A stretch of DNA of 64,000 nt, from positions 1 to 64,000 of the forward strand of contig JALMLS010000590.1 in assembly GCA_038496445.1 (NCBI GenBank), in the 5' to 3' direction. This document shows, piece by piece, positions 405-29,600 of the stretch. Under the pieces are notes generated by a model. The model ran no database searches. It saw nothing but the letters and a program-made list of their open reading frames with translations, and was not told where the DNA came from. Numbering within the stretch: the first letter of the stretch is position 1; the number at the start of each line of letters is the position of its first letter. The stretch comes from Trichosphaerium sp. ATCC 40318 (Eukaryota; Protista; Tubulinea). The translations under genes were made by a program, and so were the position numbers.

Positions 405-555
405 GGTGCCTCTTTGTTAGTTTTCAAAACAGAAACTGATTTTTATGCGCACTGGTCACAATTCTTCAATAAGCCTCAACCACTCAACGTTACAACAACC
501 AACATGAATAGGACCCACAAAGCGGGTCACAGAGCTGCACCTCTCTGGTCTAGTT

Positions 556-1784: not shown

Positions 1785-2026
1785 AGAGCCATCAATCTAA
1801 AAGTGTGGCCACTGAGGTAACTTGAGCAAAAACTTTAAGTGAGGTGTCAGGCCTAAACAGAAAACAACCAAACACATGTTAACATACAATTTTAATAACA
1901 ATATACACTTAGGTACACGTAAAGAAAGTTGGTACAGAGCTTTTTTGGCCTAGTGCCACAAAAATAGGATAATTGATTGGTGGTTGTTCTTTTTTGCTTT
2001 GTCTGCAAATCAAAAAAACAAAAGAG

Positions 2027-3718: not shown

Positions 3719-3905
3719 TTTTGGTTGGTATCTTTCCGGATACAGGTGTGGGGTGATAGTGTTTACTCGTTGTAACGCGAGGTTGGTTTATCAAGGAAGA
3801 GCAGGCAGTTAAGTGAGTTTTAATTTGTGGTGTAGCAATTTGAGTTTTCATCGCAGTATAAACTGTTACCCAAGCGTAATATTGGCAAATCGAACAGGAG
3901 CATGC

Positions 3906-6900: not shown

Positions 6901-7522
6901 GTACTGGTTTTTCTGAAATTTGTTTTTCAGGTATTACATTGTACGCTTCCTCCACATATGTGCACAACATCAAGAAACTGCCCAGTGCTTTGCTGACTTG
7001 AACGGTGTTTCTTACCTGGTACCAGTAATCAAACGATATTATAGACAAGAAATTGTCAATACAGTATGTGTGCCATGTCTTGGCACAATCAAAGAAATAC
7101 TCACCAGTGATTCCTGCTTATATCCGCCCAAAACACACATTACTGTTGTGTTGGAACCTTTAAAGGGTTTACATGACTGGATACAAGAGGATATAAACAG
7201 TAGATGTCCTAATCAGGTACCGTTGGTGTCTTCCAATATACCTTTGTCTGACTGTGTGTACAATAGGAAATATGGGACTTATTGGACAGTGTAGTCACAC
7301 TGTGCTATGACAATACTAAAGCCACTACAGAGGTATGTAAAAACGGTATGGTTCGTTAGTGCTAATTTCAATTGAAAGACTGCAGACTTGCTTGCCAAAC
7401 TGCAAACAACGTCACCTGTTGTTGCACCCAAAACAAACAAACAGAACAAGCAAACATTTACAGACATCAACAACATTGTAAATGATTTGTTGAATGACGC
7501 AGAGGGAGTAACAGACATATAA
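3906..7522 (+). CDS. DENN (AVL9/DENND6/DENND11-like) domain protein with C-terminal ARM/HEAT repeats
   Basis: N-terminal VAVAEFDINEGNTISSSYP and LYGIALFRNKSDATVKRGAIQKSL are uDENN-like. Later helical motifs (PNVRQAAAQTL, GVRKYSCEILGQL, GGGGVQTLL) resemble ARM/HEAT repeats. Stop TAA at 7520-7522. Confidence 0.65.
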
Positions 7523-7599
7523 CATTGTAAATCATATAAATACGTTGTATATTGTAGTTTATTGGTACCCCAATATTCAAAATGTTACATATATCAATT

Positions 7600-7672
7600 G
7601 GGCGAGTGGTGTAATTGGTATCACACGCCCTTAGCATGGGCGAGGTACCGGGATCGAAGCCCGGCTTGTCCA
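7600..7672 (+). tRNA. tRNA-Ala (anticodon AGC)
   Basis: Cloverleaf: acceptor GGGCGAG/CTTGTCC with G3:U70, anticodon arm CGCCC-TTAGCAT-GGGCG, T arm CCGGG-ATCGAAG-CCCGG. Confidence 0.96.
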
Positions 7673-7678
7673 ACCATC

Positions 7679-8162: not shown

Positions 8163-8248
8163 CAGTGGTGGAATCAAACAAAATACGCGTGCCTAAAACG
8201 TGCCATTTGCGTGGAAAATAAACATGCCCAAAACGTGCCATTTGCGTG
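8163..8248 (+). mobile_element. Solo terminus of the palindromic element family
   Basis: CAGTGGTGGAATC is identical to the termini at 9959 and 25821, and is followed by the same subterminal units (GCCCAAAACGTGCCATTTGCGTG). Confidence 0.75.
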
Positions 8249-8699
8249 TTGTATCCATGACCTGTCCTTAATAGAAATTTGGTCAAAAATTCAAAAATAA
8301 AAAAATTGACAAACTCAAAACTCAACCATCTCACCCCAAAGCTGATCACTAACAATAAAACATGTATCTACAAGTAAACAGTAGTTATGTTTGTATCGGC
8401 ATGGCTTTAAAAGTAGGCAAAAAATGTAAAAATACCCAAAAACCAACAATTTCTTGATTTTTCTATTTTTTGTGAATAACTCAGGTCTACTAGTATGAAT
8501 CCTTTAAAAAAAAAGTATGGCCCACTGTTAGATACAATGCATGGTTTCATGGTGGTTTGGGTTCAGTGCCCCTTTTTTGTACTTTCAAGGTCCAAAAAGC
8601 CAAGCCCACATGCAGACAAAGGGTTATAGCAGCAACATGAAGAGTGTTGTGTTGATGCATGGAGATTGAACAACACTCTAGCAGCTTTCTTAATTTTAG

Positions 8700-8912
8700 T
8701 AATATGTGTGGCAAACTATGTAAAAAATGAAAAGTATATGTGATGGGTTGGTTGACCTCATGCATATGGTACAGCAAAGACTTGAGAGTGAGAACAAAAA
8801 GTGTTGGAGAAAGAGAATCACCTTGCTTGTTTCCATTTTTAATCTTAAATGTGAAACTATGCTGGAAGATTAGCCAACATGCATTGAATAGCCTTGTGAG
8901 CAACTGAGTCAA
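8700..8912 (-). pseudogene. Non-LTR retrotransposon reverse transcriptase fragment
   Basis: FKIKNGNKQGDSLSPTLFVLTL matches the non-LTR RT motif GxxQGDxLSPxLF. The flanks are degenerate. Confidence 0.75.
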
Positions 8913-9014
8913 AGTTTTTGAAAGACAACAAACACAAAGTCATAATCCTATTTCACCAGTTGTGAGTGCTAGGTGACACCACTTTTCTAACAGTAAAATC
9001 GGGAGTAGATAATG

Positions 9015-9310
9015 CAGTAGTAAAATCGGAAGTACGTGTGAAGTACGTATATTGTACGTGTGAAAAAGTACGTGGCACGTACGTATATTGTACGTGTCAA
9101 AATACGTGCCACGTACGTATTTCATCCGTGTGAAAAGTACGTGGCACGTACGTATATTGTACGTGTGAAAAGTACGTGCCACGTACGTATATTGTACGTG
9201 TGAAAAGTACGTGCCACGTACGTATATTGTACGTGCGAAAAGTACGTGCCACGTACGTATATTGTACGTGTGAAAAGTACGTGGCACGTACGTATATTGT
9301 ACGTGTCAAA
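9015..9310 (+). repeat. Terminus plus ~35-bp tandem subterminal array of a related DNA element
   Basis: Starts CAGTAGTAAAATCGGAAGTACG (compare CAGTGGTGGAATCGGACAGTACG), then about 7 units of GTACGTG(G/C)CACGTACGTATATTGTACGTGTGAAAA. Confidence 0.85.
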
Positions 9311-9375
9311 AGTTGGAATTTTGCCTCGTTTTGAACAAAAAATACTAAAAACGATGGATTGGTTTATTGGTAATT

Positions 9376-9448
9376 ACAACTACTTATACATTACAATACA
9401 TTACAATACACTACATACAATACATTACAATACATTACAATACATTAC
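9376..9448 (+). repeat. (TACAA/TACAT)n pentanucleotide microsatellite
   Basis: Directly visible tacattacaatacattacaataca... run. Confidence 0.8.
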
Positions 9449-9958
9449 CACTAAACGACCATGTTTCTGGAGATATTTCTATCATCATGCCTTACCGACC
9501 TACAACTGCAACTTAACCACCACAACTTAATGACTATTCAGAAAAATGCTTGAAACCCATAATCGTCTTTAAAAAGTGGTTTAATAGAGCTATTAAGCCA
9601 TAATATCCTTAAACTACTCCAAATACATATTTTCTGTCGTTTTTGCTTAAAAATGGTGCACCAAACCCCAAACCACCATGAAACCATGCATTGTACCTAA
9701 TTATACCTAATGCTACATTTTCTGAGTGGTTTGTACAGAGAGACCAAAGTTATGCAATAAAACAACAAAACACAGCAAAAAGCTACATTTTGCACTTTAT
9801 TAAGTTTTCTCCTCTAGTTTTTAAGTAAATGCCCTAATAATCCTAAAACACCCTCTCCTATTAATAATACATGGTTTCGTACCTTGCGACTACAAGCTGT
9901 CTGTTATTTTTTGAGATTTTTTTTTGAATTTTTTGGCTACCAAATGCCAGATTTTTTG

Positions 9959-10342
9959 CAGTGGTGGAATCGGACAGTACGCGAATGGCACGTTTTGGGC
10001 ACGTTTTGGGCACGTTTTTTTTCCACGCAAATTGCACGTTTTGGGCACGTTTTTTTTCCACGCAAAAGGCACGTTTCTCTTCCACATGCTGGCCACGCAA
10101 ATGGCACGTTTTGGGCACGTTTTGGGCACGCGGATTTTCCACGTTTTGGACACGTTTTGGGCACGCATATTTTCCACGTTTTGGGCACGCTTTGGACACG
10201 TTTATTTCACACGTTTTGAACACGTTTTGGGCACGCATATTTCACACGTTTTAAGCACGTTTTGAGCACGCATATTTTCCACGCAAATGGCACGTTTTGG
10301 GCACGCGTATTTTTCACGCAAATGGCACGTTTTGAGCACGCA
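9959..10342 (+). repeat. Left terminus and subterminal repeat array
   Basis: Many CACGTTTTGGG (11-bp) and CACGCAAATGG units. Confidence 0.92.
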
Positions 10343-10417
10343 TAATACAGCAGTTGTTAACAAATTTTATAATATTTATTTAATTATATAAACCAACAAT
10401 CGTTACAAATAAATACA

Positions 10418-12872
10418 TTACTGCTCACTATCATCATCTTCATCTTGACTATCATCATCACTTTCAACAATATCCTCCAAAGAAAATGGCAGAGCAGCAT
10501 CGTATAATGTTAAAAAATGTTGTCTGGGTTTTAGTACAAGTAAAACTAAGTATTTTTTAAATAAATCATAATGTCTTATTAACAACCTACCTCCTGGATG
10601 TTCATCAGCAAATTTAATGTTTTTTGAGCTCCATAAAGAAGTGAATAGTTGTCCTAGTTTGTTTTGACGTGCTTTTTTTACAGTAGGATTTCGGCAAAAA
10701 ATGTCAGGTGTTTTTATCTACAAAATAGTCAATTGAATATGATAAAAAGAACAAATAAGGCTTACCTTGGTGCAAAACTGTTTGACTGCTTCTAAAGTGG
10801 TTAAAGCAGCAGTACCTGGGTTGAAAATACTGCTGGATTTATATTGTATAGGTTCAAAAGAACTTTTCTTGCAATTGAAAGTTTGATTACAAACAAGTTT
10901 TGCAAATCTTGCAATAACATCTGCATCGTACTTGCAAGCTGTTTAAAATTAATGTCATTAAGTTTATTTGATAAAAACTATAACGTACTTGCAAAGTAGT
11001 AAACTTTGGCAAAAGAAGGACGTATAAAAAACAATGTCCAAGTGCTAATGTTGAAATAAATATTTACGATCGGAATAAAAAAAAAAGTACCACAGTGGTA
11101 GAAAATCATTATAAGTATCTACAGCAATTAGTTTGTCTTGTATTGGTACTGGCAATATATAATATTCTGCATAATCGTCATCTTCTGATTCTTTCTCTGA
11201 GTAACACAATACTTTGCCCACTTTAGTTTTTTTCTTTGAAAAAAAATTATTAATAATTCCCAATATTGAAATGATTGATCGTACTCTGGTAAGCATTTTT
11301 GCTGTTCTAGTTTTAGAAAACAATCCAATATTAGGTTCTTTAGCATCCACTAAAACTCTAAATGCAGCATGAGTAATGAATGGTGGCTATGGTTTGTACT
11401 GAAGTATCATATCGGTAAATGCTTGTAAAGAAGGAGCAACAGATTCTCTTGTAAATAAAAAACAATAATCTGCAATTGTACTGTGCTTTAATAAGCAATA
11501 CATGGGAGTATTCCATTGTAGTGTTGTGTAGTACTGTTCATCATCATCTATTGAAGTTCCATCTGATGGTCTGGGTTGTTCAACGATTGGTGATTTTTGT
11601 TTTGTTTTTTTTGGTTTCCTCTTTCGTAATAGACTTGATTCTTCTTTTTCTCCTTGTGCTTCATGTAATTTAAATGGAGTTATCAATTTTGGTGTAGTAG
11701 TTAATTCAGATGAGTCAGACGATTCACTACAACAATCAATGAATAAAAAGGAAACAACCAAAAAAAAAGAAAGCAAGCAATCGTACTCTAAACTGTCAAC
11801 AGGTGTTGAGGTTTTTTGTTGTTTGGAGGTGTTTTTTTTAGCTTTTATAGCTGTGAGATATAGTTCCATACCTTCTTCATCAAGCTGTCTAATAAATATC
11901 AATAAAACTTGAAATAAATGGAAAAAAAATTGTACTTGAACGATAGAGGTAAACTGGCCATCCCAATAAACATGCCCTTTTGTACAGGAACAAAAGGAAT
12001 ATGCTTGTTTTGCCATGCTTGTTTAGTAACTGCTTTTAAGTTGGCTATTAATCCATCAGTGCTTTGTTTGTAAAAACTATTGTCTGTATTTACGAATGCA
12101 ATTAATTTTTTCTCTATATGAATGTATCAGTTCAAATTTGTTAAAAATGGCTTGCCTGCAAGTTCAAAAGCATGGTCCTCATTCTCAGTGATATAATTGA
12201 AAAATTTTCTAGCAAATTGTCCCAATCGCCTGTTTACAGAATCTCTAATAAATTTTGACATTTTTGTTTTATGTATATCCTCCATTTCCGATCCAAATTG
12301 CACTTTGAATTGTTTGGCAAGCTCCACATAAAAAGTGTCATCTTTAATGTGAGTATAAGGAAAGGCAAATAGCAATTTGGATCGTATCCAATCCTAATTA
12401 TTTTTTAATTGTTAAGGGTTTTAAACAGATTTTTGGTTCAACGATCGTACCCATTTTCTCTTTTCAATGTCCTCAATTTGTTTGTGAGTTGTTATAAATT
12501 GTTTGAAGTTAGCTTCAATGGTCTTAACAGCTTTGGTTATTTCTAAAACACCTTTTTCAACATTTGAAAGTCTTTTATCCATCGCATCCTTCATAACATT
12601 TATTGAATTCATCAATTCATCTAAAAACAATTAAATAAGGCAAAAACTAGGTAAACGATCGTACTGGTGGTTATGTTACCATAGGAATTTTCCAAAATCT
12701 CTTCAACTGATTCTGCTTCATTATTATTAACCAATCGCCTTCTTTTCTCAACTGTGCTATTTGTTCTGGATCGTTTTCTTTTGTTTGGTTGTTGTTTGCT
12801 TTTTTGAGGAGAAAATTGTTCCATATAACTATTTAGATCGTTTATAGCATTCATACCTTGAGAATTGTCCAT
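10418..12872 (-). CDS. Element gene B, left-arm copy (coiled coil, degenerate Ulp1-like domain, acidic tail)
   Basis: Mirror copy of 22896-25351. Confidence 0.65.
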
Positions 12873-12950
12873 TGTATTGCTTTAATTAATTTAGAGATCG
12901 TAATTGAATTAATTTTACCAATCGTAAGTCTTGGCTTTTCAAAATTACTT

Positions 12951-15498
12951 TTATTTATATACATTATCCATAGTAACTACTCCTACATACAATAAATCAG
13001 TCTGTACATGGAGATTTTAAAAACTTACCTTTATTGGCCATCATTTGATTGAAGTTATTGATTTCTTCATTGTGATTTGTACTTTGATCGGAATAAGAAG
13101 GAACATAATAAGGAAGAGATTTACAACAACAACAATTAATGTTAGAAATACTGTAATCGTCTTCTATTTGATTAAAATGTAATCTTTCCTTACGAAATCT
13201 GGCAAAATCTTTACCATGCCATTTTGTTATGCCATGAAAATACCATTTTGTGATAACCCCTAAAGGTTTTTGACCTAAATTGTAAGTAAGTTGGAGTAGT
13301 ATATATGTACTTACTTGGTAAATGAGAAAATGCTTTGACATGGGCATCGTTATAATTAATTATTGGACATGGAGTTATAAAAAATGTACTTCCTTCATTT
13401 GAATCGTTTCCCTTCCAGTTTTTTTGTAAGAAAAGAGACTGAGTCAGTATTGTTTTGGCATGAGTTAAAGTGTTAGGATCTTCTGGCATTTCAATAAAAG
13501 CCCAAGAGTCATGTACAAATCTGTAAGAAAATAAATTATTATTAAATGGAAAATAACATTTGTTGATCGTACTCATAAGAAACAAATCTATTCTTAAGCA
13601 CAACCTTTGCTCCAACAACTACACTTCCTTGGAAAGTTTTACATTCTTGAGAAATCAAATTCATTAATTGCAAGCTAATCACGATTAGTAATTTCAAAAA
13701 TTGATTTTTTTACCCATAATTATTGTAGATAATTAAATCTCCTTCATGTATTGACTGTTGATTAGTTTGTGGGTTAACTGCAAAAGCAGCACGGATAAGT
13801 AAGTGTTTGTTTGCTTGGGTTAAAGGATCATTTAAATCCAAATACAAGGCATGCTTCCAAACAAAGTTTCTTTTATAAGGATTGTCCCATCGTAATAAAT
13901 TTTTCCTTAATAATTTCATTTTTTGTTGTACCACTGATGATATTTCTTCCTCTGGTTGCAATTGACGAAGAATGACACTGTAGAAGCCTTTATGCTGGTT
14001 GTTTTTAAATTGTACCCTTGCTCTATGTCTTATCGTTGAAGGCATGCCACCATGCAATGCCCAAGCAAAACTAATTCCATCTATTTGTACTGTTTTTTTT
14101 CTGGCTATTAAAAAAAATTGAACAATAAAAAAAATGTACATGCCATTACTTACCAATATCAGATAATTCAATCGTTTTAAAACAATCCACATGATTTACA
14201 TCATTTTTATCAGCAGGAAAACCAATTATTGTGATACCAGCAGTTGGATGTGCATGGCCTCCATCGGTGTGCCATCCCAAAGTGTTACTTTGTGTGTAAT
14301 ACTGTAAAAAAAATTACAAAAATATCAAAAATCGTAAAGAAATACCTTTATCTCTATGCTGTAATATTTAGAGTCATATTCTGTTTTAGTTTTACTGTGA
14401 CCCCATAATAGAAAGTGTAGTTTATATAAACGGTGCAAAATAGTATTGTCAGTGGCAGATAAAGGGTTAGGAGGATGACAATGATTATTGCCATAAAGAA
14501 TTGGATTATCAGTATCGTAAGGAGACAACCAAGGACCAGCTCCAAAAAAAGCTGCAGCATGTTTTGTCATGTAATTACATGTTAATAGATCAGTTGCTTT
14601 GCTTGCACGATACTAAATTCAAGTTAATACTTGTAAGAAAGAAATATGTACCATGTAATGTAATTTATCTTTATGTAATTCAATAAATTGTCTTAAATCG
14701 TTTATTGTGTTTGCCATATACTGAGACTCATTCTTAATAACATATAGATTAGTTGTAACTCCATCTTTGTCCAGTTTATGATATTTAAGATGTATATCAC
14801 ATTCAGCTGTAGTCAGCTAAAGGTTTTGTAAGCACTTAAAACAAAAAAAAAAGTACCTTATCTGATTTAAATGTACGATTTCTTGAGTCATCAAAATGAA
14901 TCGTAGGAATGTTGGATTTTGCTCTTTTTTTAATTTGTTTATGATAGCCATCCTTGAACACTTCTTCAGGATAGTCTGATCCTATATAAATGGTTTACAA
15001 ATAAATGGTTGCAAAATGTCATTACTTACTTCCTGTTGTTATTGAATCGTAAGCCAACCGGATTTGTTTAACACTAGGAGCTTTATTTAAAGCTGATTTA
15101 CTAGTGTGTTGATTTGTTACACTATCATATAAGGCTATATTACCAGCCACTTCATATAAGTGTTGTATAGAGCATTTTTCTCTACTACATAACTTGAACA
15201 AAAAATGTAAATATCGTAATAAGAATTCTGGATAATGTACCTCAACAATGACTTTTTGAGCAGCTTTTGATAACTGTTGTTGTGTAGGACGATGTATAGT
15301 TTTGATTTTATTCAATATGACATCTCTTTGTGGTTTTTGGACTTCTAATTTTATCTTAAAGTCTTCAGATGAATCTTTTTGTAAACCCATGCCATTGTTG
15401 TATTTGTATAATGTGAGTACTGCATCGTATATGGCCTTTGTATATTCCTTTCTAAGTGTCTTATTTATATCTATTGTAGTTTTGTTTACTACAGCTAT
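12951..15498 (-). CDS. Element gene A, left-arm copy (AlkB-type 2OG-Fe(II) dioxygenase plus BAH-like domain)
   Basis: Mirror copy of 20270-22817. Differs by KHALY versus KHVLY. Confidence 0.7.
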
Positions 15499-15639
15499 CT
15501 AAATTCGAATTAGCCATTGACAAGTAAAAAATTAAACATATCAAACAAAACTCATTGTTGGACATTGAACAGCATGGCCAATCGCAATATAACCCACTGA
15601 CAGCATATGAAGTGCAACATAATTGATAACAACATGTCT

Positions 15640-18600
15640 GATGGCAGCATAACAACCAGCACAATTGACATGGTCAACACGATTGTAACAAGCTGACACG
15701 ATTGACATAGCCAACATGATTGACGATTGCAGCATAGCCAACACGATTGACATGGCCAACACGATTGACATAGCCGACACGAGCCGACACGAGCCGACAC
15801 GAGCAGCATAGCCAACACGATTGACATAGCTGACACGATCGCAGCATAACCAACACGATTGACATAGCTGGCACGATCGCAGCATAGTCAACACAATTGA
15901 CATAGCTGACACGATCGCAGCATAACCAACACGATCAGCAACGATTGCAGCATAGCCAACACGATCAACATAGCCGACACGATCAACATAGTCAACATGA
16001 TTGACATGGCCAACACGATTGACATAGCTGACACGATCAGCATAGCCAACACGATTGACATAGCTGACACGATCGCAGCATAACCAACATGGTCAGCAAC
16101 GATTGCAGCATAGCCAACACGATCAACATAGCCGACACGATTGACATAGCTGACACGATCGCAGCATAACCAACACGATTGACATGGCCAACACGATTGA
16201 CATAGCCGACACGATCAGCATAGCCAACACGATTGACATAGCTGACACGATCGCAGCATAACCAACATGATTGACATAGCTGACACGATCACAGCATAGC
16301 CAACATGATTGACGATTGCAGCATAGCCGACACGATTGACATAGCTGACACGATACAGCACAGCTGACATGATTGCAGCATAACTGCCATGATTAAAGCA
16401 TAGCTGACACAGTACAGCACAATCGACACGATCACTGCAGCATAACCAATACGACTGCCACAGCATAGCCGATACAATACAGCACAGCCAACACGATACA
16501 GCACAACCGACACGATCACTACAGCATAGCCTATACGATCACTGTGGCATAGCCAATATCAATTACAGCATAATCGATGCGATAACTGCAGCATAGCTGG
16601 TACAATCACCGCAGCATAGCCGATACGATCACCACAGCATAGCTGATACGATCGCTGCAGCATAGCCGATACGATCACCACAGCATAGCTGACACAATCA
16701 CTGCAGCATAGCCGATACGATCACTGCAGCATAGCTGACACAATCACTGCAGCATAGCTGATATGATCACTGCAGCATAGCCGATACGATCACTGCAGCA
16801 TAGCTGACACAATAGCTGACACAATCACTGCAGCATAGCTGATATGATCACTGCAGCATAGCCGATAGCGATACGATCACTGCAGCATAGCCGATACGAT
16901 CACCACAGCATAGCTGACACAATCACTGCAGCATAGCTGATACGATCACTGCAGCATAGCCGATACGATCACCACAGTATAGCCGATACGATCGCTGCAG
17001 CATAGCCGATACGATCACCACAGCATAGCCGATACGATCACCACAGCATAGCCGATACGATCGCTGCAGCATAGCCGATACGATCACCACAGCATAGCTG
17101 ATACGATCGCCGCAGCATAGCCGATACGATCACCACAGCATAGCTGCACAATCACTGCAGCATAGCCGATACGATCACCACAGCATAGCCAATACGATCA
17201 CTGCAGCATAGCCGATACGATCACTGCAGCATAACTGACACAATCGCTGCAGCATAGCCGATACGATCGCTGCAGCATAGCTGACACGATCGCCACAACA
17301 TAGCCAATACAGCATAGCCAATGCAGCATAGCTGGTACGATCACTAGTACTACGCAACATAGCTGACACAGCATAGCCAACAAGATCGCCAACGATGCGC
17401 AGCATAGCTGATACACAGCATAGCCAACACGATCGCCAAACAATACATAGCATAGCCAATACACCATAGCCAACAAGATCGCGACGCAATCGCTAGCCGA
17501 TACACAGCATAGCTGATACAGCAAAGCCGACACGATTGCCAACCGATACGCAGTATAGCTGATACACCAAAGCCGACACGATCGCTAACCTATACACAGC
17601 ATAGCCGACACGATCGCTAACCGATACACAGCATAGCCGATACAGCAAAGCCAACACGATCTAACGATACGCAGCAAAGCCGACATGATCACCAGCCAAT
17701 ACGCAGCAGAGCCGACACGATCGCTAACCGATACACAGCAGAGCCGAAACGATCGCTAAAACCGATACGCAGCATAGCAATACAGCAAAGCCGACACGAT
17801 CGCTAGCCAATACGCAGCAGAGCTGAAACGATCACTAACCGATACGCAGCATAGCGATACAGCAAAGCCGACACGATCACCAGCTGACACGCAGCAAAGC
17901 CGACGCGATCGCTAACCGATACGCAGCATAGCCAATACAGCAAAGCCGACGTGATCGCCAGCCGATACGCAGCAGAGCCGAGCGATCGTGTCGGCTTTGC
18001 TGTATTGCTATGCTGCGTATCGGTTTTAGCGATCGTTTCGGCTCTGCTGTGTATCGGTTAGCGATCGTGTCGGCTCTGCTGCGTATTGGCTGGTGATCAT
18101 GTCGGCTTTGCTGCGTATCGGTTAGATCGTGTTGGCTTTGCTGTATCGGCTATGCTGTGTATCGGTTAGCGATCGTGTCGGCTATGCTGTGTATAGGTTA
18201 GCGATCGTGTCGGCTTTGGTGTATCAGCTATACTGCGTATCGGTTGGCAATCGTGTCGGCTTTGCTGTATCAGCTATGCTGTGTATCGGCTAGCGATTGC
18301 GTCGCGATCTTGTTGGCTATGGTGTATTGGCTATGCTATGTATTGTTTGGCGATCGTGTTGGCTATGCTGTGTATCAGCTATGCTGCGCATCGTTGGCGA
18401 TCTTGTTGGCTATGCTGTGTCAGCTATGTTGCGTAGTACTAGTGATCGTACCAGCTATGCTGCATTGGCTATGCTGTATTGGCTATGTTGTGGCGATCGT
18501 GTCAGCTATGCTGCAGCGATCGTATCGGCTATGCTGCAGCGATTGTGTCAGTTATGCTGCAGTGATCGTATCGGCTATGCTGCAGTGATCGTATTGGCTA

Positions 18601-20130
18601 TGCTGTGGTGATCGTATCGGCTATGCTGCAGTGATTGTGCAGCTATGCTGTGGTGATCGTATCGGCTATGCTGCGGCGATCGTATCAGCTATGCTGTGGT
18701 GATCGTATCGGCTATGCTGCAGCGATCGTATCGGCTATGCTGTGGTGATCGTATCGGCTATGCTGTGGTGATCGTATCGGCTATGCTGCAGCGATCGTAT
18801 CGGCTATACTGTGGTGATCGTATCGGCTATGCTGCAGTGATCGTATCAGCTATGCTGCAGTGATTGTGTCAGCTATGCTGTGGTGATCGTATCGGCTATG
18901 CTGCAGTGATCGTATCGGCTATGCTGCAGTGATCATATCAGCTATGCTGCAGTGATTGTGTCAGCTATGCTGCAGTGATCGTATCGGCTATGCTGCAGTG
19001 ATCGTATCAGCTATGCTGCAGTGATTGTGTCAGCTATGCTGTGGTGATCGTATCGGCTATGCTGCAGTGATTGTGTCAGCTATGCTGTGGTGATCGTATC
19101 GGCTATGCTGCAGCGATCGTATCAGCTATGCTGTGGTGATCGTATCGGCTATGCTGCGGTGATTGTACCAGCTATGCTGCAGTTATCGCATCGATTATGC
19201 TGTAATTGATATTGGCTATGCCACAGTGATCGTATAGGCTATGCTGTAGTGATCGTGTCGGTTGTGCTGTATCGTGTTGGCTGTGCTGTATTGTATCGGC
19301 TATGCTGTGGCAGTCGTATTGGTTATGCTGCAGTGATCGTGTCGATTGTGCTGTACTGTGTCAGCTATGCTTTAATCATGGCAGTTATGCTGCAATCATG
19401 TCAGCTGTGCTGTATCGTGTCAGCTATGTCAATCGTGTCGGCTATGCTGCAATCGTCAATCATGTTGGCTATGCTGTGATCGTGTCAGCTATGTCAATCA
19501 TGTTGGTTATGCTGCGATCGTGTCAGCTATGTCAATCGTGTTGGCTATGCTGATCGTGTCGGCTATGTCAATCGTGTTGGCCATGTCAATCGTGTTGGTT
19601 ATGCTGCGATCGTGTCAGCTATGTCAATCGTGTCGGCTATGTTGATCGTGTTGGCTATGCTGCAATCGTTGCTGACCATGTTGGTTATGCTGCGATCGTG
19701 TCAGCTATGTCAATCGTGTTGGCTATGCTGATCGTGTCAGCTATGTCAATCGTGTTGGCCATGTCAATCATGTTGACTATGTTGATCGTGTCGGCTATGT
19801 TGATCGTGTTGGCTATGCTGCAATCGTTGCTGATCGTGTTGGTTATGCTGCGATCGTGTCAGCTATGTCAATTGTGTTGACTATGCTGCGATCGTGCCAG
19901 CTATGTCAATCGTGTTGGTTATGCTGCGATCGTGTCAGCTATGTCAATCGTGTTGGCTATGCTGCTCGTGTCGGCTCGTGTCGGCTCGTGTCGGCTATGT
20001 CAATCGTGTTGGCCATGTCAATCGTGTTGGCTATGCTGCAATCGTCAATCATGTTGGCTATGTCAATCGTGTCAGCTTGTTACAATCGTGTTGACCATGT
20101 CAATTGTGCTGGTTGTTATGCTGCCATCAG
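15640..20130. repeat. Central head-to-head satellite of the palindrome
   Basis: Core ATCGT(G/A)TCGGCTATGCTG. Units are 18/20 bp in the outer zones, 23 bp in the middle zones and ~30 bp at the centre. Orientation flips at 17980/17981. Confidence 0.95.
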
Positions 20131-20269
20131 ACATGTTGTTATCAATTATGTTGCACTTCATATGCTGTCAGTGGGTTATATTGCGATTGGCCATGCTGTT
20201 CAATGTCCAACAATGAGTTTTGTTTGATATGTTTAATTTTTTACTTGTCAATGGCTAATTCGAATTTAG

Positions 20270-22817
20270 ATAGCTGTAGTAAACAAAACTACAATAGATA
20301 TAAATAAGACACTTAGAAAGGAATATACAAAGGCCATATACGATGCAGTACTCACATTATACAAATACAACAATGGCATGGGTTTACAAAAAGATTCATC
20401 TGAAGACTTTAAGATAAAATTAGAAGTCCAAAAACCACAAAGAGATGTCATATTGAATAAAATCAAAACTATACATCGTCCTACACAACAACAGTTATCA
20501 AAAGCTGCTCAAAAAGTCATTGTTGAGGTACATTATCCAGAATTCTTATTACGATATTTACATTTTTTGTTCAAGTTATGTAGTAGAGAAAAATGCTCTA
20601 TACAACACTTATATGAAGTGGCTGGTAATATAGCCTTATATGATAGTGTAACAAATCAACACACTAGTAAATCAGCTTTAAATAAAGCTCCTAGTGTTAA
20701 ACAAATCCGGTTGGCTTACGATTCAATAACAACAGGAAGTAAGTAATGACATTTTGCAACCATTTATTTGTAAACCATTTATATAGGATCAGACTATCCT
20801 GAAGAAGTGTTCAAGGATGGCTATCATAAACAAATTAAAAAAAGAGCAAAATCCAACATTCCTACGATTCATTTTGATGACTCAAGAAATCGTACATTTA
20901 AATCAGATAAGGTACTTTTTTTTTTGTTTTAAGTGCTTACAAAACCTTTAGCTGACTACAGCTGAATGTGATATACATCTTAAATATCATAAACTGGACA
21001 AAGATGGAGTTACAACTAATCTATATGTTATTAAGAATGAGTCTCAGTATATGGCAAACACAATAAACGATTTAAGACAATTTATTGAATTACATAAAGA
21101 TAAATTACATTACATGGTACATATTTCTTTCTTACAAGTATTAACTTGAATTTAGTATCGTGCAAGCAAAGCAACTGATCTATTAACATGTAATTACATG
21201 ACAAAACATGCTGCAGCTTTTTTTGGAGCTGGTCCTTGGTTGTCTCCTTACGATACTGATAATCCAATTCTTTATGGCAATAATCATTGTCATCCTCCTA
21301 ACCCTTTATCTGCCACTGACAATACTATTTTGCACCGTTTATATAAACTACACTTTCTATTATGGGGTCACAGTAAAACTAAAACAGAATATGACTCTAA
21401 ATATTACAGCATAGAGATAAAGGTATTTCTTTACGATTTTTGATATTTTTGTAATTTTTTTTACAGTATTACACACAAAGTAACACTTTGGGATGGCACA
21501 CCGATGGAGGCCATGCACATCCAACTGCTGGTATCACAATAATTGGTTTTCCTGCTGATAAAAATGATGTAAATCATGTGGATTGTTTTAAAACGATTGA
21601 ATTATCTGATATTGGTAAGTAATGGCATGTACATTTTTTTTATTGTTCAATTTTTTTTAATAGCCAGAAAAAAAACAGTACAAATAGATGGAATTAGTTT
21701 TGCTTGGGCATTGCATGGTGGCATGCCTTCAACGATAAGACATAGAGCAAGGGTACAATTTAAAAACAACCAGCATAAAGGCTTCTACAGTGTCATTCTT
21801 CGTCAATTGCAACCAGAGGAAGAAATATCATCAGTGGTACAACAAAAAATGAAATTATTAAGGAAAAATTTATTACGATGGGACAATCCTTATAAAAGAA
21901 ACTTTGTTTGGAAGCATGTTTTGTATTTGGATTTAAATGATCCTTTAACCCAAGCAAACAAACACTTACTTATCCGTGCTGCTTTTGCAGTTAACCCACA
22001 AACTAATCAACAGTCAATACATGAAGGAGATTTAATTATCTACAATAATTATGGGTAAAAAAATCAATTTTTGAAATTACTAATCGTGATTAGCTTGCAA
22101 TTAATGAATTTGATTTCTCAAGAATGTAAAACTTTCCAAGGAAGTGTAGTTGTTGGAGCAAAGGTTGTGCTTAAGAATAGATTTGTTTCTTATGAGTACG
22201 ATCAACAAATGTTATTTTCCATTTAATAATAATTTATTTTCTTACAGATTTGTACATGACTCTTGGGCTTTTATTGAAATGCCAGAAGATCCTAACACTT
22301 TAACTCATGCCAAAACAATACTGACTCAGTCTCTTTTCTTACAAAAAAACTGGAAGGGAAACGATTCAAATGAAGGAAGTACATTTTTTATAACTCCATG
22401 TCCAATAATTAATTATAACGATGCCCATGTCAAAGCATTTTCTCATTTACCAAGTAAGTACATATATACTACTCCAACTTACTTACAATTTAGGTCAAAA
22501 ACCTTTAGGGGTTATCACAAAATGGTATTTTCATGGCATAACAAAATGGCATGGTAAAGATTTTGCCAGATTTCGTAAGGAAAGATTACATTTTAATCAA
22601 ATAGAAGACGATTACAGTATTTCTAACATTAATTGTTGTTGTTGTAAATCTCTTCCTTATTATGTTCCTTCTTATTCCGATCAAAGTACAAATCACAATG
22701 AAGAAATCAATAACTTCAATCAAATGATGGCCAATAAAGGTAAGTTTTTAAAATCTCCATGTACAGACTGATTTATTGTATGTAGGAGTAGTTACTATGG
22801 ATAATGTATATAAATAA
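20270..22817 (+). CDS. Element gene A, right-arm copy: AlkB-type 2OG-Fe(II) dioxygenase plus BAH-like domain (start codon not resolved)
   Basis: Splicing about 8 GT-AG introns gives one open frame containing SIEIKYYTQSNTLGWHTDGGHAHPTAGITIIG...WALHGGMPSTIRHRARV...GFYSVILRQ, then YEFVHDSWAFIEMPEDP...GVITKWYFHG...ERLHFNQIEDDYSISNINCCC. Stop at 22815-22817. Confidence 0.72.
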
Positions 22818-22895
22818 AAGTAATTTTGAAAAGCCAAGACTTACGATTGGTAAAATTAATTCAATTACGATCTCTAAATTAATTAAAGCAATACA

Positions 22896-25351
22896 ATGGA
22901 CAATTCTCAAGGTATGAATGCTATAAACGATCTAAATAGTTATATGGAACAATTTTCTCCTCAAAAAAGCAAACAACAACCAAACAAAAGAAAACGATCC
23001 AGAACAAATAGCACAGTTGAGAAAAGAAGGCGATTGGTTAATAATAATGAAGCAGAATCAGTTGAAGAGATTTTGGAAAATTCCTATGGTAACATAACCA
23101 CCAGTACGATCGTTTACCTAGTTTTTGCCTTATTTAATTGTTTTTAGATGAATTGATGAATTCAATAAATGTTATGAAGGATGCGATGGATAAAAGACTT
23201 TCAAATGTTGAAAAAGGTGTTTTAGAAATAACCAAAGCTGTTAAGACCATTGAAGCTAACTTCAAACAATTTATAACAACTCACAAACAAATTGAGGACA
23301 TTGAAAAGAGAAAATGGGTACGATCGTTGAACCAAAAATCTGTTTAAAACCCTTAACAATTAAAAAATAATTAGGATTGGATACGATCCAAATTGCTATT
23401 TGCCTTTCCTTATACTCACATTAAAGATGACACTTTTTATGTGGAGCTTGCCAAACAATTCAAAGTGCAATTTGGATCGGAAATGGAGGATATACATAAA
23501 ACAAAAATGTCAAAATTTATTAGAGATTCTGTAAACAGGCGATTGGGACAATTTGCTAGAAAATTTTTCAATTATATCACTGAGAATGAGGACCATGCTT
23601 TTGAACTTGCAGGCAAGCCATTTTTAACAAATTTGAACTGATACATTCATATAGAGAAAAAATTAATTGCATTCGTAAATACAGACAATAGTTTTTACAA
23701 ACAAAGCACTGATGGATTAATAGCCAACTTAAAAGCAGTTACTAAACAAGCATGGCAAAACAAGCATATTCCTTTTGTTCCTGTACAAAAGGGCATGTTT
23801 ATTGGGATGGCCAGTTTACCTCTATCGTTCAAGTACAATTTTTTTTCCATTTATTTCAAGTTTTATTGATATTTATTAGACAGCTTGATGAAGAAGGTAT
23901 GGAACTATATCTCACAGCTATAAAAGCTAAAAAAAACACCTCCAAACAACAAAAAACCTCAACACCTGTTGACAGTTTAGAGTACGATTGCTTGCTTTCT
24001 TTTTTTTTTGGTTGTTTCCTTTTTATTCATTGATTGTTGTAGTGAATCGTCTGACTCATCTGAATTAACTACTACACCAAAATTGATAACTCCATTTAAA
24101 TTACATGAAGCACAAGGAGAAAAAGAAGAATCAAGTCTATTACGAAAGAGGAAACCAAAAAAAACAAAACAAAAATCACCAATCGTTGAACAACCCAGAC
24201 CATCAGATGGAACTTCAATAGATGATGATGAACAGTACTACACAACACTACAATGGAATACTCCCATGTATTGCTTATTAAAGCACAGTACAATTGCAGA
24301 TTATTGTTTTTTATTTACAAGAGAATCTGTTGCTCCTTCTTTACAAGCATTTACCGATATGATACTTCAGTACAAACCATAGCCACCATTCATTACTCAT
24401 GCTGCATTTAGAGTTTTAGTGGATGCTAAAGAACCTAATATTGGATTGTTTTCTAAAACTAGAACAGCAAAAATGCTTACCAGAGTACGATCAATCATTT
24501 CAATATTGGGAATTATTAATAATTTTTTTTCAAAGAAAAAAACTAAAGTGGGCAAAGTATTGTGTTACTCAGAGAAAGAATCAGAAGATGACGATTATGC
24601 AGAATATTATATATTGCCAGTACCAATACAAGACAAACTAATTGCTGTAGATACTTATAATGATTTTCTACCACTGTGGTACTTTTTTTTTTATTCCGAT
24701 CGTAAATATTTATTTCAACATTAGCACTTGGACATTGTTTTTTATACGTCCTTCTTTTGCCAAAGTTTACTACTTTGCAAGTACGTTATAGTTTTTATCA
24801 AATAAACTTAATGACATTAATTTTAAACAGCTTGCAAGTACGATGCAGATGTTATTGCAAGATTTGCAAAACTTGTTTGTAATCAAACTTTCAATTGCAA
24901 GAAAAGTTCTTTTGAACCTATACAATATAAATCCAGCAGTATTTTCAACCCAGGTACTGCTGCTTTAACCACTTTAGAAGCAGTCAAACAGTTTTGCACC
25001 AAGGTAAGCCTTATTTGTTCTTTTTATCATATTCAATTGACTATTTTGTAGATAAAAACACCTGACATTTTTTGCCGAAATCCTACTGTAAAAAAAGCAC
25101 GTCAAAACAAACTAGGACAACTATTCACTTCTTTATGGAGCTCAAAAAACATTAAATTTGCTGATGAACATCCAGGAGGTAGGTTGTTAATAAGACATTA
25201 TGATTTATTTAAAAAATACTTAGTTTTACTTGTACTAAAACCCAGACAACATTTTTTAACATTATATGATGCTGCTCTGCCATTTTCTTTGGAGGATATT
25301 GTTGAAAGTGATGATGATAGTCAAGATGAAGATGATGATAGTGAGCAGTAA
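22896..25351 (+). CDS. Element gene B, right-arm copy: NLS and coiled-coil protein with a degenerate Ulp1/C48-like domain and acidic tail
   Basis: Splicing gives a continuous frame from MDNSQG to DEDDDSEQ*. It has an NLS-like KRKRSR and a segment YYILPVPI...TWTLFFIRPSFAKVYYF resembling the Ulp1 beta core. The domain call is tentative. Confidence 0.65.
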
Positions 25352-25426
25352 TGTATTTATTTGTAACGATTGTTGGTTTATATAATTAAATAAATATTAT
25401 AAAATTTGTTAACAACTGCTGTATTA

Positions 25427-25821
25427 TGCGTGCTCAAAACGTGCCATTTGCGTGAAAAATACGCGTGCCCAAAACGTGCCATTTGCGTGGAAAATATGCG
25501 TGCTCAAAACGTGCTTAAAACGTGTGAAATATGCGTGCCCAAAACGTGTTCAAAACGTGTGAAATAAACGTGTCCAAAGCGTGCCCAAAACGTGGAAAAT
25601 ATGCGTGCCCAAAACGTGTCCAAAACGTGGAAAATCCGCGTGCCCAAAACGTGCCCAAAACGTGCCATTTGCGTGGCCAGCATGTGGAAGAGAAACGTGC
25701 CTTTTGCGTGGAAAAAAAACGTGCCCAAAACGTGCCCAAAACGTGCAATTTGCGTGGAAAAAAAACGTGCCCAAAACGTGCCCAAAACGTGCCATTCGCG
25801 TACTGTCCGATTCCACCACTG
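25427..25821 (-). repeat. Right subterminal repeat array and terminus
   Basis: Mirror of 9959-10342 with one extra 11-bp unit. Confidence 0.92.
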
Positions 25822-26290
25822 TCAGTACTGAATAGGGTAGGAGAGAGTGGGTTACCTTGTCTTGTATGTATCATGTTCAACTTTGAATGTTCTGTTGGAG
25901 ACAACCCCATTAATTCTAACAGCAACTTGGATTTGGAGCTGCCCAACAATGGCCTTAGCCATGACAGGAGAGAGACCAATGTGGATGAGAATTAGTATGA
26001 GTACATTGTGTGCACAGCTATCAAACGCCTTTTTGTTGTCCAATGGGCAAAGAGAGAGTGGAGTACCTTTATTATGATGAGCTTCAACTTTTTCCAATGT
26101 GGCAATTTGGTTATCAACTATATCACAACCTGGAATAAAACTGTTTTGGTTAGGACTTATCATGCTAGGTAAAAATTTGAGTAGCCTTTTATTGATGACC
26201 TTCATGATAGTTTGATAGTTAAAAGGTACCTGGACTACAGAAATGCCTTGAAATTGTCAGCAATGGAACATATGTCTGGAATAAAAAGAC
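25822..26290 (-). pseudogene. L1/Tx1-type non-LTR reverse transcriptase fragment, truncated by the palindrome end
   Basis: YQTIMKVINKRLLKFLPSMISPNQNSFIPG...LDNKKAFDS..., then a frameshift, then RQGNPLSPTLF abutting the terminus at 25821. Confidence 0.88.
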
Positions 26291-26603
26291 CACCTAAGTG
26301 AAATGGTAGCAAAGTTTTATTTGAATAAAGCACTGGAATAGTGTAAAGTTAACATGAGAGTTGAGTGAAGTAGAAGAAGCATGGTGAGAAAATATAAAAA
26401 AAAAATCATCCACTGACATCCAAACACTGGCTAATTGCCATGGTAGTAAGTGAAGACAGCTAGAAGTAAAATCCTTTAGGAGATGTTGCATGCTTTGCTT
26501 AATTCTGGAAGCCTCCTTAAGACTGGACACTGGTTGAGTGAAAATGATTACATTAGTGAGAATCAACAGGATATTGAAAAGCTGCAAGATTTATTATTTT
26601 ACA

Positions 26604-29600
26604 TTAAGCCAAATAAGATGCAGAGTTGGATTGTTTAATAGCCTGTACTTGTTCATAGGAGAATAACTAAACAACAATCAACAGAAAAATAAAGCAACAA
26701 AAACCAACCTGTTCTACTTCAACCCATTGATCTTGGTGAGTTCTGTTAAAGCTTCTTAATGCTTCAGCAACAGCTTCATTTATTGGATTTGGAGCATTGC
26801 GGTGACTGGCTATTTCCTCCCTATTGAGTAGTTAGTTTAATAGCACAACCACTTGGGACTTGCATTATACTTGGTAACCACTTTGGCAAGCTGTATGGAC
26901 AACTCTCTGCAATGGCAATCAAACCCAACACAGCCCCATGACGTTTAGCAATTGCCAGTTTTGCATCTGTTATGTTGTTTAGTGGCAATAACCTGCACCA
27001 CATGTGTACCTTTGGCGTTTAACAGTTTTATTTGCTTTTTAGACAAAGGCAATGCTTGTAACTTGAACCCATCAACCAATTTATCAACAGTCCATGCTGT
27101 TGACTTAATGATTGATGACAGACAAGTTTTGGCAACATTTCTGACTTCAACCTGGACATCCACCAAGCTTTGAGATACAAACACTAAAATGTGTTCAACA
27201 TCTTGTTTAGACATAACACATGCGTGATTGAATGTCAATATCCTAAACAACAGCTCAATTGGTGGGCAGGAAATACAGAAACATGCACATACTGAAGGAA
27301 TGGAAGCAATGCAACGCGCACTCTCCACGCAGGATGGTCAGCTACCACCTGGATTTGTGAATAGATTATATCATGAATATCTTTCTTGCTGTATAATATT
27401 TGTGAAGCAAGGGCCAATACAGCTCGTGCCAAATTCCTGGTTGGGTGAGTTAAACACATTGTAATAAATGGGAGACTATTGTACCTAACGTCTTCATGTA
27501 ATGCCACATGAAGTTTTAGAATAATTGGTAAAAGCTGTGGCAAGTAGTGAACCATAGGTGATGAAATAGAAATACTGAGAACCATCTATTATTATTGGGA
27601 AAAGTTAAAAATCAAATGAACGCTAACAACGCTTATCATACCCATTCAAGTATTGTTTCACATGCATGTGCTATCGTGTCATTATCGGCAACTTTAAGCG
27701 CAATGTAATTTTGGAGTATTTGTTTGAACTGCTGGACGTAAGATTGCAACGTTGAATCAATTGTCAGCTTCCATTTTCCCTGTTGTTGATAGGACCTGCC
27801 TAACTCGAATACCTACAACCCCTAAGCATTGTGTATGCTATGTGTATACACTGTACCTTGCTTATGATGCTTGCTATTTGCTGGCGCACACGCTTGTAGT
27901 CATGGCCGAGTATATTCGCATCAGATACTGATTTTAGTAATGCCACTAGCCCACACTCAATTCAAATATGCACAAGTAAAACGTACAGGCTTTTGGGTAC
28001 GACCGCCAAGAAGTTCCAATGAGATATGCTTCTATAAAGGACAGCTTCTTTATCAGAGATGTGGATGACTGGTTAGGATCAAACTCAATTGAGTCTAGCT
28101 CTTGTGGTATAAAACTGCAGCGTCTAGGATCCCTACTAGATTTTAGCAAATCGAAATAACCACGCAGTTGTGTGTGGTAACTGGTGTACCTGTCTTGTGC
28201 CGCATAACGCAATGCGAACTGCCAATCGTTGAGAGATTGTGGGGATTCGAATTTAGCGTGTAATGCACGTGTGATGACGTCTTGAGCGAGTTTGCACTAT
28301 TCAAATATGTTAGCCGCACTGTTGTTAACAATAACTAAAACAAAAGCATCACGCACCATGACAATACTACGAGCGTAGTCCGTCTTATTTGAGGCGAGGA
28401 CTAGTCCAATGAAGATCTCAATAACTACACATTGTCTAGGTAGAACCACAATATTAGCTGTGGCCACATGGATGAAACACAAACGCACGAAGCACGTGAA
28501 GTGGACGTCGCCTTCTCTAGGAGTAATTCTCTACAGGCTTCACAAGCACCATCAACCATGTCAAAGATGGCCATCCAAAAGTATGTTAGTTCTACGCCAC
28601 CACGTGAACTATTAGACGCAAAGCTCACAGACCTGCCATATTTGTGAGCGTGGATAGTGGCGTAAAGTTGTAGGGTAGGAAACGTACTCAAAGGAAGCGG
28701 TCATGTGGAAAAGGTTGCTCATCGATGATTTTAGCAGGTTAACTCCAGACAAGCCACGACCATTGTCTCCTGACTTGGTAAAAACGTATTGCTCTTCCAA
28801 TCGTGTCAGGAACTGCTCTAGTTGAGGTCGTTCAACCAACCACGTCAAGCTGCGTAGCAATATAGGGGAAGGTGTCAGCGGTTTGTTTGCTGAACTCGTT
28901 TCAGGTCGTAGAGGATAATTGGTTGATGTAACAGCGCCATTCCACCCGACCCAACCATTGTCAATAAATCCAAAGCCATCGTATTCATTTCCCGTAGGTG
29001 TGGTTAATGAAGTAAGCGATGCAGGCGTTATATCCGCATTGGTATTTTGTGTTTGCGATGGAGAAATTTGAGCGTGTGCTGTGACATAACCAATTGCCAC
29101 GTTCCTCACCCAAGCCAAGGACTCCATAAGTGTCGTTTGCTTAACAGGTACAGGTTAACAAACAATGTGCGAAAAGTAACGAGCCAAGAGAGAGGAGGCC
29201 GTACAAGCGTGTCTTGATCAAGTGAAGTTAATTCGCAAGGCATGTTGGACTGGGATAACATCACCAATGACATGATGCCCATCGCCTTGTATCGCCAATG
29301 ACCATCTGCTTTGCCTACAAATGATGATAGCATCTTCATGACATTTTCTTTACTCTCATCAATGGTCTTTGACCTAGTCGCCATCGTAAAGTTAGCGGTA
29401 CACAAAACAGAAAAAAAGAGTTTGTACAATTCTTTATAATCTTGTTCGGCAGCCGATGCTTCGCTTGTGGACAATTGTAAATTACCTGTTGCAATGATTA
29501 CCACCAAAAACTGAGCAAGAAGCGTGTAAGAACGTACCTGTAGGCAATCCAAATCTTGGGTCATCCAGCCGCTTGTACGCTTTGACGCAACTACAATATA

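Follow-up and report, generated by a model that had tools for sequence, protein, structure and literature searches.

How does a dioxygenase carried by a transposon find the element that carries it? The question is raised by a giant palindrome at positions 9959-25821 of a 64,000-nucleotide stretch of the protist Trichosphaerium sp. ATCC 40318 (contig JALMLS010000590.1, positions 1 to 64,000; this whole stretch is called the window). Each arm of the palindrome contains, from the outside inward, a terminus, a CACGT array, gene B, gene A, and a satellite, and both genes are transcribed outward. VANC has an address and, to our knowledge, no enzyme of its own, and the TET-carrying transposons of fungi and algae have no described address. 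The palindrome offers a candidate address, the word ACGAT, together with a candidate enzyme, which makes targeting directly testable. Its main value lies in the motif signature, which is independent of the central join, and in two intact orphan genes.

ACGAT in decaying DNA

The CpG observed-to-expected (o/e) ratio was ~0.9 in host genes and 0.04 in a decayed long interspersed nuclear element (LINE) flanking the palindrome, with a gradation between them; because of this pattern, the host appears to have methylated the CpGs of its repeats for a long time. In the element genes the ratio was 0.13 for nonmotif CpGs, those other than CGAT being depleted eightfold, and 1.5 for CGAT. CGAT was counted among the CpGs on either strand, and the pattern covers both genes of the right arm:

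20340-25370, + strand: ACGAT/CGAT tiling over both genes; CGAT makes up 44 of 56 CpGs, with 26 coding-strand ACGAT

The 26 coding-strand copies compare with 2.45 expected from dinucleotides (Markov model, P = 3e-18) and with 5.7 for 5-mers of the same composition without a CpG (P = 5e-10), an approximately fivefold excess. Since the excess holds over CpG-free words, ACGAT is not just spared but enriched. Across eight equally large host windows, no nonhomopolymer 5-mer passed P = 6e-6, and CGAT was underrepresented in the host (0.7). Host DNA (1-7000 and 27800-64000) also underuses GATC (0.6) and all words starting with CGA (~0.7), overall CpG being near normal there.

The word is oriented in the genes (26 copies versus 10 on the opposite strand) and is kept where the protein does not require it. 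At synonymous third positions the C:T ratio was 12:22 before GAT versus 1:133 before other G-starting codons (P = 9e-9), and six of the seven GTACG words in the element genes continue with AT, five of them being intron donors (GTACGAT), versus 10 of 125 in the host. Because ACGAT is kept at synonymous sites and intron donors, the pattern is not explained by protein sequence. The coding-strand copies in gene A are evenly spaced (mean, 174 bp; coefficient of variation [CV], 0.33), and none of 20,000 random placements was as even; strict nucleosome phase was not found for the motif sites (Rayleigh P = 0.4 to 0.9).

ACGAT is also the repeating core of the satellite, in which the motif CpG was intact in 57 of 71 units and the neighboring GCCGAC CpG in 16 of 52, counts taken over units that are not independent. 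A single-nucleotide difference between the arms at 25267 is a decay of TACGAT to TATGAT, and motif sites therefore do get methylated. Such decayed forms indicate that the word is maintained and not simply immune. Selection on the ACGAT word is thus well supported by its distribution in the sequence, and the signature holds whether or not the central join is real. Systems of this kind could be found from sequence alone, through the context in which CpGs survive in a decaying element.

Two intact genes per arm

The models of genes A and B were built by hand and checked exon by exon, with predicted splice junctions. The reading frames of both genes run uninterrupted through every exon in each arm, and the introns (39 to 72 nt) are all GT-AG except one GC-AG.

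10418-12872, - strand: gene B, left copy; 11 exons, 645 amino acids, open
12951-15390, - strand: gene A, left copy; 10 exons, at least 680 amino acids, open
20378-22817, + strand: gene A, right copy; 10 exons, frame open from 20270
20378-20738, 20787-20911, 20952-21116, 21156-21422, 21467-21614, + strand: gene A, right copy, exons 1 to 5
21664-22054, 22094-22195, 22248-22453, 22494-22739, 22786-22817, + strand: gene A, right copy, exons 6 to 10
22896-25351, + strand: gene B, right copy; 11 exons
22896-23103, 23148-23317, 23375-23612, 23685-23832, 23880-23981, 24043-24369, + strand: gene B, right copy, exons 1 to 6
24412-24484, 24536-24678, 24725-24780, 24831-25003, 25052-25351, + strand: gene B, right copy, exons 7 to 11

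The true start of gene A may lie ~100 to 170 bp further in. Upstream of its first Met, 20270-20400 (+ strand) contains a weak second AlkB-like stretch with Gln replacing His (hhalign P = 0.08).

Homology searches and folds were run on single exons. For gene A they centered on two exons:

21467-21614, + strand: gene A exon 5; GWHTD, with HxD at 21497-21505 as candidate Fe(II) ligands of a 2-oxoglutarate (2OG)-Fe(II) dioxygenase
21664-22054, + strand: gene A exon 6; four predicted strands; by eye, candidate distal His at 21714 or 21741 and Arg at 21744 or 21801

An AlkB profile built from 208 fetched sequences was run on 2091 six-frame stretches of the window. Exon 5 ranked joint first and matched in the HxD register, but with E = 0.77; hhalign gave P = 0.003 to 0.01. 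Exon 6, in which two His/Arg registers are possible by eye, gave a strand-rich, low-confidence model (predicted local distance difference test [pLDDT], 44), and it had no relatives among 1.84 billion representatives, in a word-indexed search (blind to much longer proteins), or in viral contigs. The exons of both genes gave nothing meaningful against Pfam, PHROGs, and NCBIfam beyond generic coiled-coil matches of gene B exon 2. No exon matched Pfam TET_JBP, and single exons gave no match to PF13532 or PF12851; exact look-ups of two open reading frames (ORFs) found nothing, and PDB sequence searches and phage/plasmid tblastn were blank. Gene A is therefore best named a predicted 2OG-Fe(II) dioxygenase of unassigned subfamily and substrate, a name that we consider probable. 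The dioxygenase label of an earlier sequence-only reading thus gained the weak AlkB match of exon 5 and drew nothing from Pfam, PHROGs, NCBIfam, PDB, or the folds.

Gene B has a coiled coil in exon 2 and a three-helix segment in exon 3 (predicted fold, pLDDT 65). Exons 7 to 10 are colinear with the Ulp1 pattern by eye, with Thr, Ala, and Ala at the triad positions, and exons 7 to 11 had no Ulp1/C48 match in Pfam or PDB. The earlier Ulp1-like name was consequently not established, being a by-eye assignment with the catalytic residues missing and no profile match; at most, the C-terminal part could be a dead Ulp1-like domain.

Two arms, probably copies of one half-element

Self-BLAST found one inverted match in the window, 9959-25821 (15.9 kb). 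When 9959-17980 (8022 bp) was aligned globally with the reverse-complemented segment 17981-25821 (7841 bp), 7822 of 8035 columns were identical, and 176 columns were an unpaired central loop; the left side measures 8.0 kb and the paired part 7.8 kb. Symmetry ends precisely at CAGTG/CACTG, and no target-site duplication (TSD) of 2 to 12 bp was found at the ends.

9959-9971, + strand: left terminus CAGTGGTGGAATC, type L
9987-10344, + strand: left subterminal array of 11- and 35-bp units with CACGT/CACGC
15640-17980, + strand: left satellite; units grade from 18/20 through 23 to 14/32 bp towards the center; 69 ACGAT, all on the + strand
17805-17980, no strand: unpaired loop of 176 bp; inversion junction at 17980/17981, adjoining a self-complementary CGATCG
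17981-20128, - strand: right satellite, mirror copy; 67 ACGAT on the - strand
25425-25793, - strand: right subterminal array, with one additional 11-bp unit
25809-25821, - strand: right terminus CAGTGGTGGAATC, identical to the left, type L

The alignment bore out the arm order and the outward genes of the sequence-only reading, as well as its statement that symmetry stops at the CAGTG termini without a TSD, and every arm difference that it had listed was present; the three further satellite substitutions, the 1-bp indel, and the 176-bp loop came in addition to its list:

10502/25267: single-nucleotide difference TAC/TAT
11760/24009: 1-bp homopolymer length, intronic
13848/21920: 2-bp change GCC/GTT, Ala/Val
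left-arm satellite: insertions of 12 and 6 bp
16725-16726 and 16764: three further satellite substitutions
17665/18121: 1-bp indel
25746: extra 11-bp subterminal unit, right arm

Outside the satellite, the arms differ by 3 substitutions in ~5.7 kb, all of which, on the coding strand, have C in the left arm and T in the right, one being at a CpG. Because of these C/T changes and the 11-bp unit, the arms look like two distinct physical copies and not one sequence written twice, and an assembly mirror of a single sequence was ruled out by the arm differences together with the nonmirrored flanks. Four of the five satellite sites that differ lie within ~160 bp of the left arm (16707-16885), two being partial unit duplications; this cluster may reflect unequal exchange or consensus error.

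In the subterminal arrays the CpGs are almost undecayed (30 intact versus 2 decayed forms), as would be expected of transposase sites under selection, and the arrays are likely to be such putative binding sites. A third terminus of the same family lies in the left flank:

8163-8248, + strand: third terminus, type R; the same 13 bp, then subterminal units (8180-8248) in reversed orientation

Its units are up to ~90% identical to those of the palindrome in the opposite orientation. Because of these reversed repeats, the ends of the parent family are probably of two kinds, L and R, and the palindrome would be two copies of the L half. Both palindrome ends are of type L, and the window sequences do not include an intact parent element. 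Positions 8163 and 25821 were considered as the two ends of one insertion, and the pair was rejected, having no TSD. Short terminal inverted repeats (TIRs; 13 bp common to the 9959 and 8163 ends) with subterminal arrays at both ends are a hAT feature. No hAT DDE transposase was matched in Pfam among the scanned exons of genes A and B, and an 8-bp TSD check on two possible end pairs matched at 1 of 8 and 2 of 8 positions. The hAT superfamily is only a lead for the parent element, because there is neither a transposase nor a TSD. A search of metagenomes for other copies by the terminal pattern, which is too short for the purpose, returned chance matches only among the matches listed.

Several claims were accordingly upheld: the element is of transposon type and has termini, its subterminal arrays preserve CpGs, both cargo genes are intact, and no transposase was detected. 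The flanks, described as unrelated, are unrelated to each other, and the left one contains the same-family terminus at 8163.

Proposed explanation

What was observed is the anatomy of the arms, the intactness of the genes, the pattern of CpG decay, the enrichment and spacing of the motif, and the third terminus. The best overall explanation, to which we give an even chance, is one of young half-element arms, sequence-specific anti-silencing, and a palindrome formed in vivo; it further assumes methylation itself, a motif binder, an enzyme activity, a superfamily, and a native join. Each arm would be a very young, real copy of half of a larger TIR DNA transposon with hAT-like ends, the half comprising a type-L end, the two cargo genes, and the satellite upstream of gene A. 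The missing half would presumably hold the transposase and a type-R end like that at 8163. The host would methylate CpGs in repeats, and a factor encoded by the element (gene B or part of gene A) would bind ACGAT, a word concentrated in the satellite and recurring about every 100 to 170 bp through both genes. The bound factor would keep the element expressed by blocking or removing 5-methylcytosine (5mC), with gene A, the probable 2OG-Fe(II) dioxygenase, as the eraser. Sequence-specific anti-silencing by a motif-binding protein is our best reading of the pattern, the step from pattern to binding being one that we infer. The anti-silencing functions proposed by the sequence-only reading gain new, independent support from the tiling, with the motif reader and the enzyme kept as predictions. 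A compact, motif-guided demethylase would be useful for epigenome editing.

The palindrome itself would be an in vivo product of a break or stall in the satellite, after which the DNA folded back or was fused at the self-complementary CGATCG; aberrant transposition would then have joined a second L end to a new site, which would explain the missing TSD. That the palindrome is a native dimer at this locus is, taken on its own, evenly balanced. In its favor are the two distinct copies, a symmetry ending at the termini, and a route known from maize, in which aberrant transposition with fusion of broken ends makes inverted duplications of one end (10.1101/2020.01.07.897926). A perfect 10-bp palindrome at the start of the right flank, described below, also counts on this side as a possible hairpin footprint. 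If native, the palindrome would have gene-bearing arms much longer than those of the foldbacks compared below.

Several findings weigh against this explanation. A near-perfect 16-kb palindrome should be unstable. The ends lack a TSD, and no second locus of the palindrome occurs within the window. On the side of the enzyme, the AlkB match appears weak, confined to gene A exon 5, and not significant window-wide; exon 6 did not match the AlkB profile; exon-by-exon searches found no homologues of protein A or B; and folds predicted from single sequences, for exon 6 of gene A (pLDDT 44) and exon 3 of gene B (pLDDT 65), had no significant Foldseek match. On the side of the motif, no protective halo was seen: nonmotif CpGs lie farther from motifs than chance, and a halo was rejected on that distance. 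Old nest DNA keeps CGAT at 6 of 13 sites (o/e, 0.36 versus 0.11 for other CpGs; P = 0.04), and part of the CGAT pattern may be a preference of the host methylase. Finally, the junction, with a loop of 176 nt and a possible overlap of 8 nt, fits amplification chimeras (PMC9984789).

Alternative explanations

The last point leads to a tentative but serious alternative, namely, that the central join is an artefact, a fold-back chimera having formed in the satellite while the genome was amplified or the library prepared and having led the assembler to link two real copies from different loci. The real element would then run past the satellite into the transposase half, and the ACGAT system would still be real. 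Inverted chimeras from multiple displacement amplification (MDA) peak at distances of 250 to 300 nt with overlaps of 5 to 8 nt (PMC9984789), and the junction has their A-B-inverted-A geometry, with the 176-nt loop and an overlap of ~1 nt, or of 8 nt (AGCGATCG) provided that the left array went on with this variant, near the published ranges. The unmatched flanks, the missing TSD, and a cut LINE without continuation also agree with it, normal elements would be asymmetric to judge from the type-R end at 8163, and the nearest host relative is on a metagenome contig, which raises the chance of single-cell material. On the other hand, a simple fold-back would mirror the flank too, so that a multicopy element and a path switch are needed, and the arms differ even 140 bp from the axis. 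On both sides, the loss of CpG fades gradually into the ends of the host genes, as for one old nest between convergent genes, but two nests would give the same picture. The earlier caveat of an amplification chimera or misjoin therefore stands, the center having the chimera form and the flanks being unmatched. If an artefact, the join is a clear example of a satellite-seeded chimera.

A second alternative, unlikely in our judgment, concerns the motif and is one of passive mimicry: the host methylase would disfavor CGAT, perhaps via N6-methyladenine (6mA) on the adjacent ApT, and regularly spaced resistant CpGs would make readers of unmethylated CpG or the 6mA machinery treat the element as a gene. 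The approximately threefold better survival of CGAT than of other CpGs in old nest DNA agrees with this, as does the even spacing of all CpGs together (CV, 0.54; mean, 98 bp), in which near-motif CGAA sites fill gaps; A follows CGAT in only 6 of 44 cases, like the VATB preference of AMT1 (PMC12695648). However, the LINE flank has no CGAT versus 5.6 expected, the CGAT share of 44/56 in the element exceeds that of the nest (P = 0.03), strict nucleosome phase is absent, and the word is specifically ACGAT, with its strand bias and a 2-kb satellite built from it. Resistance of CGAT alone would not yield a fivefold, strand-biased, even enrichment, and selection on the word is therefore supported.

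Rather less likely again is the boldest reading, a native, mobile fold-back element with gene-bearing arms of 7.8 kb that encodes its own ACGAT-addressed 5mC eraser. Here a DNA-binding or pseudo-protease adaptor would read ACGAT at roughly nucleosome spacing in exons, introns, and satellite and would guide a divergent AlkB/TET-like dioxygenase to demethylate its own family only. If true, VANDAL-type anti-silencing would have originated independently in a protist, in an element that carries the enzyme itself. Mobility as a fold-back was not established: neither a TSD nor a second copy was found, and the end at 8163 points to an inverted dimer made of one half of an asymmetric element.

We consider it quite unlikely that the left arm of one insertion and the right arm of another, from a true multicopy foldback family that moves as a unit and has gene-bearing TIRs of 7.8 kb, were joined, the TSD loss being an assembly effect because reads could not span 16 kb. 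We know of no foldback with spliced genes in its arms. The identical ends, the kept subterminal CpGs, the intact genes in both arms, and the low divergence (3 substitutions in 5.7 kb) would suit such a family, and foldbacks arise through transposase loss and TIR elongation (PMC4079207); the foldback compared, however, has TIRs of up to 1.7 kb and no coding middle (PMC4079207), and the 8163 end differs from the L end. Least probable of all is a "killer" allele serving the host, in which read-through from convergent host genes would produce a long hairpin RNA, and with it silencing of the family in trans: a PA200-like gene does end ~780 bp from the right end and reads towards the palindrome, but the element genes read outward and would form no hairpin, and 16 kb of read-through would be needed. 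An rDNA-type minichromosome was rejected, as the palindrome is embedded among host genes.

Comparison with known systems

The short motif bound by the VANC21 protein of Arabidopsis is dense and oriented in the transposon family to which VANC21 belongs, tandem repeats having amplified it there, and VANC21 demethylates whole elements (PMC5735166). The motif described here is likewise enriched, oriented, dense, amplified in tandem repeats, and not enriched in the host. The element and VANDAL/VANC share an oriented, dense motif that has been multiplied in dynamic tandem repeats upstream of genes and also occurs in introns; both have cargo genes (which in VANDAL stand besides the transposase) and a host that methylates CpGs in repeats (presumed here). 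In contrast, the present motif contains a CpG, is tiled in coding exons at synonymous positions, and lies beside a probable dioxygenase, with motif binding as a prediction, whereas VANC motifs are mainly noncoding and the host is a plant (PMC5735166). Exon scans of genes A and B found no domain of a VANC-homologous protein or MuDR transposase.

TET/JBP dioxygenases are carried by DNA transposons of fungi and algae and are thought to be anti-silencing (PMC12730594; 10.64898/2026.10.09.758095). Like the transposons of fungi and Chlamydomonas, the element has CA..TG ends and may carry a 2OG-Fe(II) dioxygenase against 5mC silencing; unlike them, it has only a weak AlkB match around HxD, no transposase, and no TSD. 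No report was found of cis motif tiling in TET/JBP transposons. The element thus appears to combine the cis pattern of VANDAL/VANC with a candidate enzyme like that of TET/JBP transposons.

In shape, the palindrome resembles Mu killer and Ac killer (10.1101/2020.01.07.897926), which are inverted duplications of one end and adjoining genes, fused at an internal break, with the other end lacking. Its arms, however, are 7.8 kb versus 1.8 to 3.9 kb in the Ac cases and hold whole, outward-reading genes and no transposase sequence, and the 8-bp TSDs of Ac composite insertions are absent. It also resembles the foldbacks FB, Tetris, and Galileo (PMC4079207), which are nonautonomous, with very long, internally repetitive inverted arms and a short noncoding middle, here 7.8-kb arms and a 176-bp loop; the present arms are several times longer, with spliced genes, and no TSD was found. 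With the hAT element Ac/Ds of maize (PMC3260210) it shares a short TIR, subterminal arrays of a CpG word (AAAACGTG here, AAACGG in Ac), and two distinguishable ends, but it has no hAT transposase or 8-bp TSD, and subterminal arrays occur in other superfamilies too. The element would therefore work like VANDAL-type anti-silencing and is shaped like Mu killer or a foldback, yet it appears to fail tested features of each class because there is no VANC or transposase homology and no TSD.

Flanks and host setting

The host genome is compact with short introns. The repeat nest that contains the element has a tRNA-Ala gene on one side and, on the other, the 3' end of the PA200-like gene (identified by eye; stop at 26604). 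CpG o/e returns to normal over 1 to 1.5 kb on both sides of the nest, and the depletion extends into the 3' ends of both neighboring host genes (7000-7500 and 26600-27800).

7599-7676: tRNA-Ala(AGC), left edge of the nest
8277-9945, no strand: older, decayed inverted-repeat element, with a 35-bp CpG-rich array at 9030-9313
25822-25831: perfect 10-bp palindrome TCAGTACTGA, at the start of the right flank, directly outside the terminus
25822-26205, - strand: decayed LINE reverse-transcriptase (RT) fragment, cut at the right terminus (RVT_1, E = 2e-4)

The nest elements could possibly be targeted to the tRNA-adjacent site. The LINE has no continuation in the left flank, and the flanks are therefore not one simple insertion site; an RT-like piece in the left flank was rejected as the continuation, since it covers the same motif. 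Inside the old inverted repeat lies an ORF, 8547-8912 (- strand), with QGxxLSPxLF, LINE-RT-like by eye and without a Pfam RT match. The 10-bp palindrome TCAGTACTGA, noticed after the fact in a window in which perfect 10-bp palindromes have a frequency of 0.0013 per position, may be the footprint of a hairpin (P nucleotides) or may consist of two 4-bp element ends fused together.

The older inverted repeat is best kept in a core at 8528-8578/9649-9700, and its outer arms score 117.5 versus a shuffle maximum of 90.5. The AAGTACGTGCC unit of its 9030-9313 array resembles the subterminal unit of the giant element, and it also has a 5/10-bp array at 9386-9448; it is possibly a relic of a sister subfamily.

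Besides the PA200-like gene, the host genes in 27000-64000 include DDX47/RRP3, UPF0004 (MiaB/CDKAL1-like), myosin, Sec23/24, and a bZIP factor, and a STE20-like kinase was seen by eye near 2700-3200. The DDX47 helicase is ~55% identical to those of named taxa and 88% identical to one protein of Joint Genome Institute (JGI) sample 3300044452, in which a 1.5-kb contig holds its only close relative (88% protein and 71% DNA identity). A related organism, with related elements, may be present in that sample. A small imperfect palindrome (60508-60565) and a 21-bp tandem repeat (60606-60659) lie near a coiled-coil ORF.

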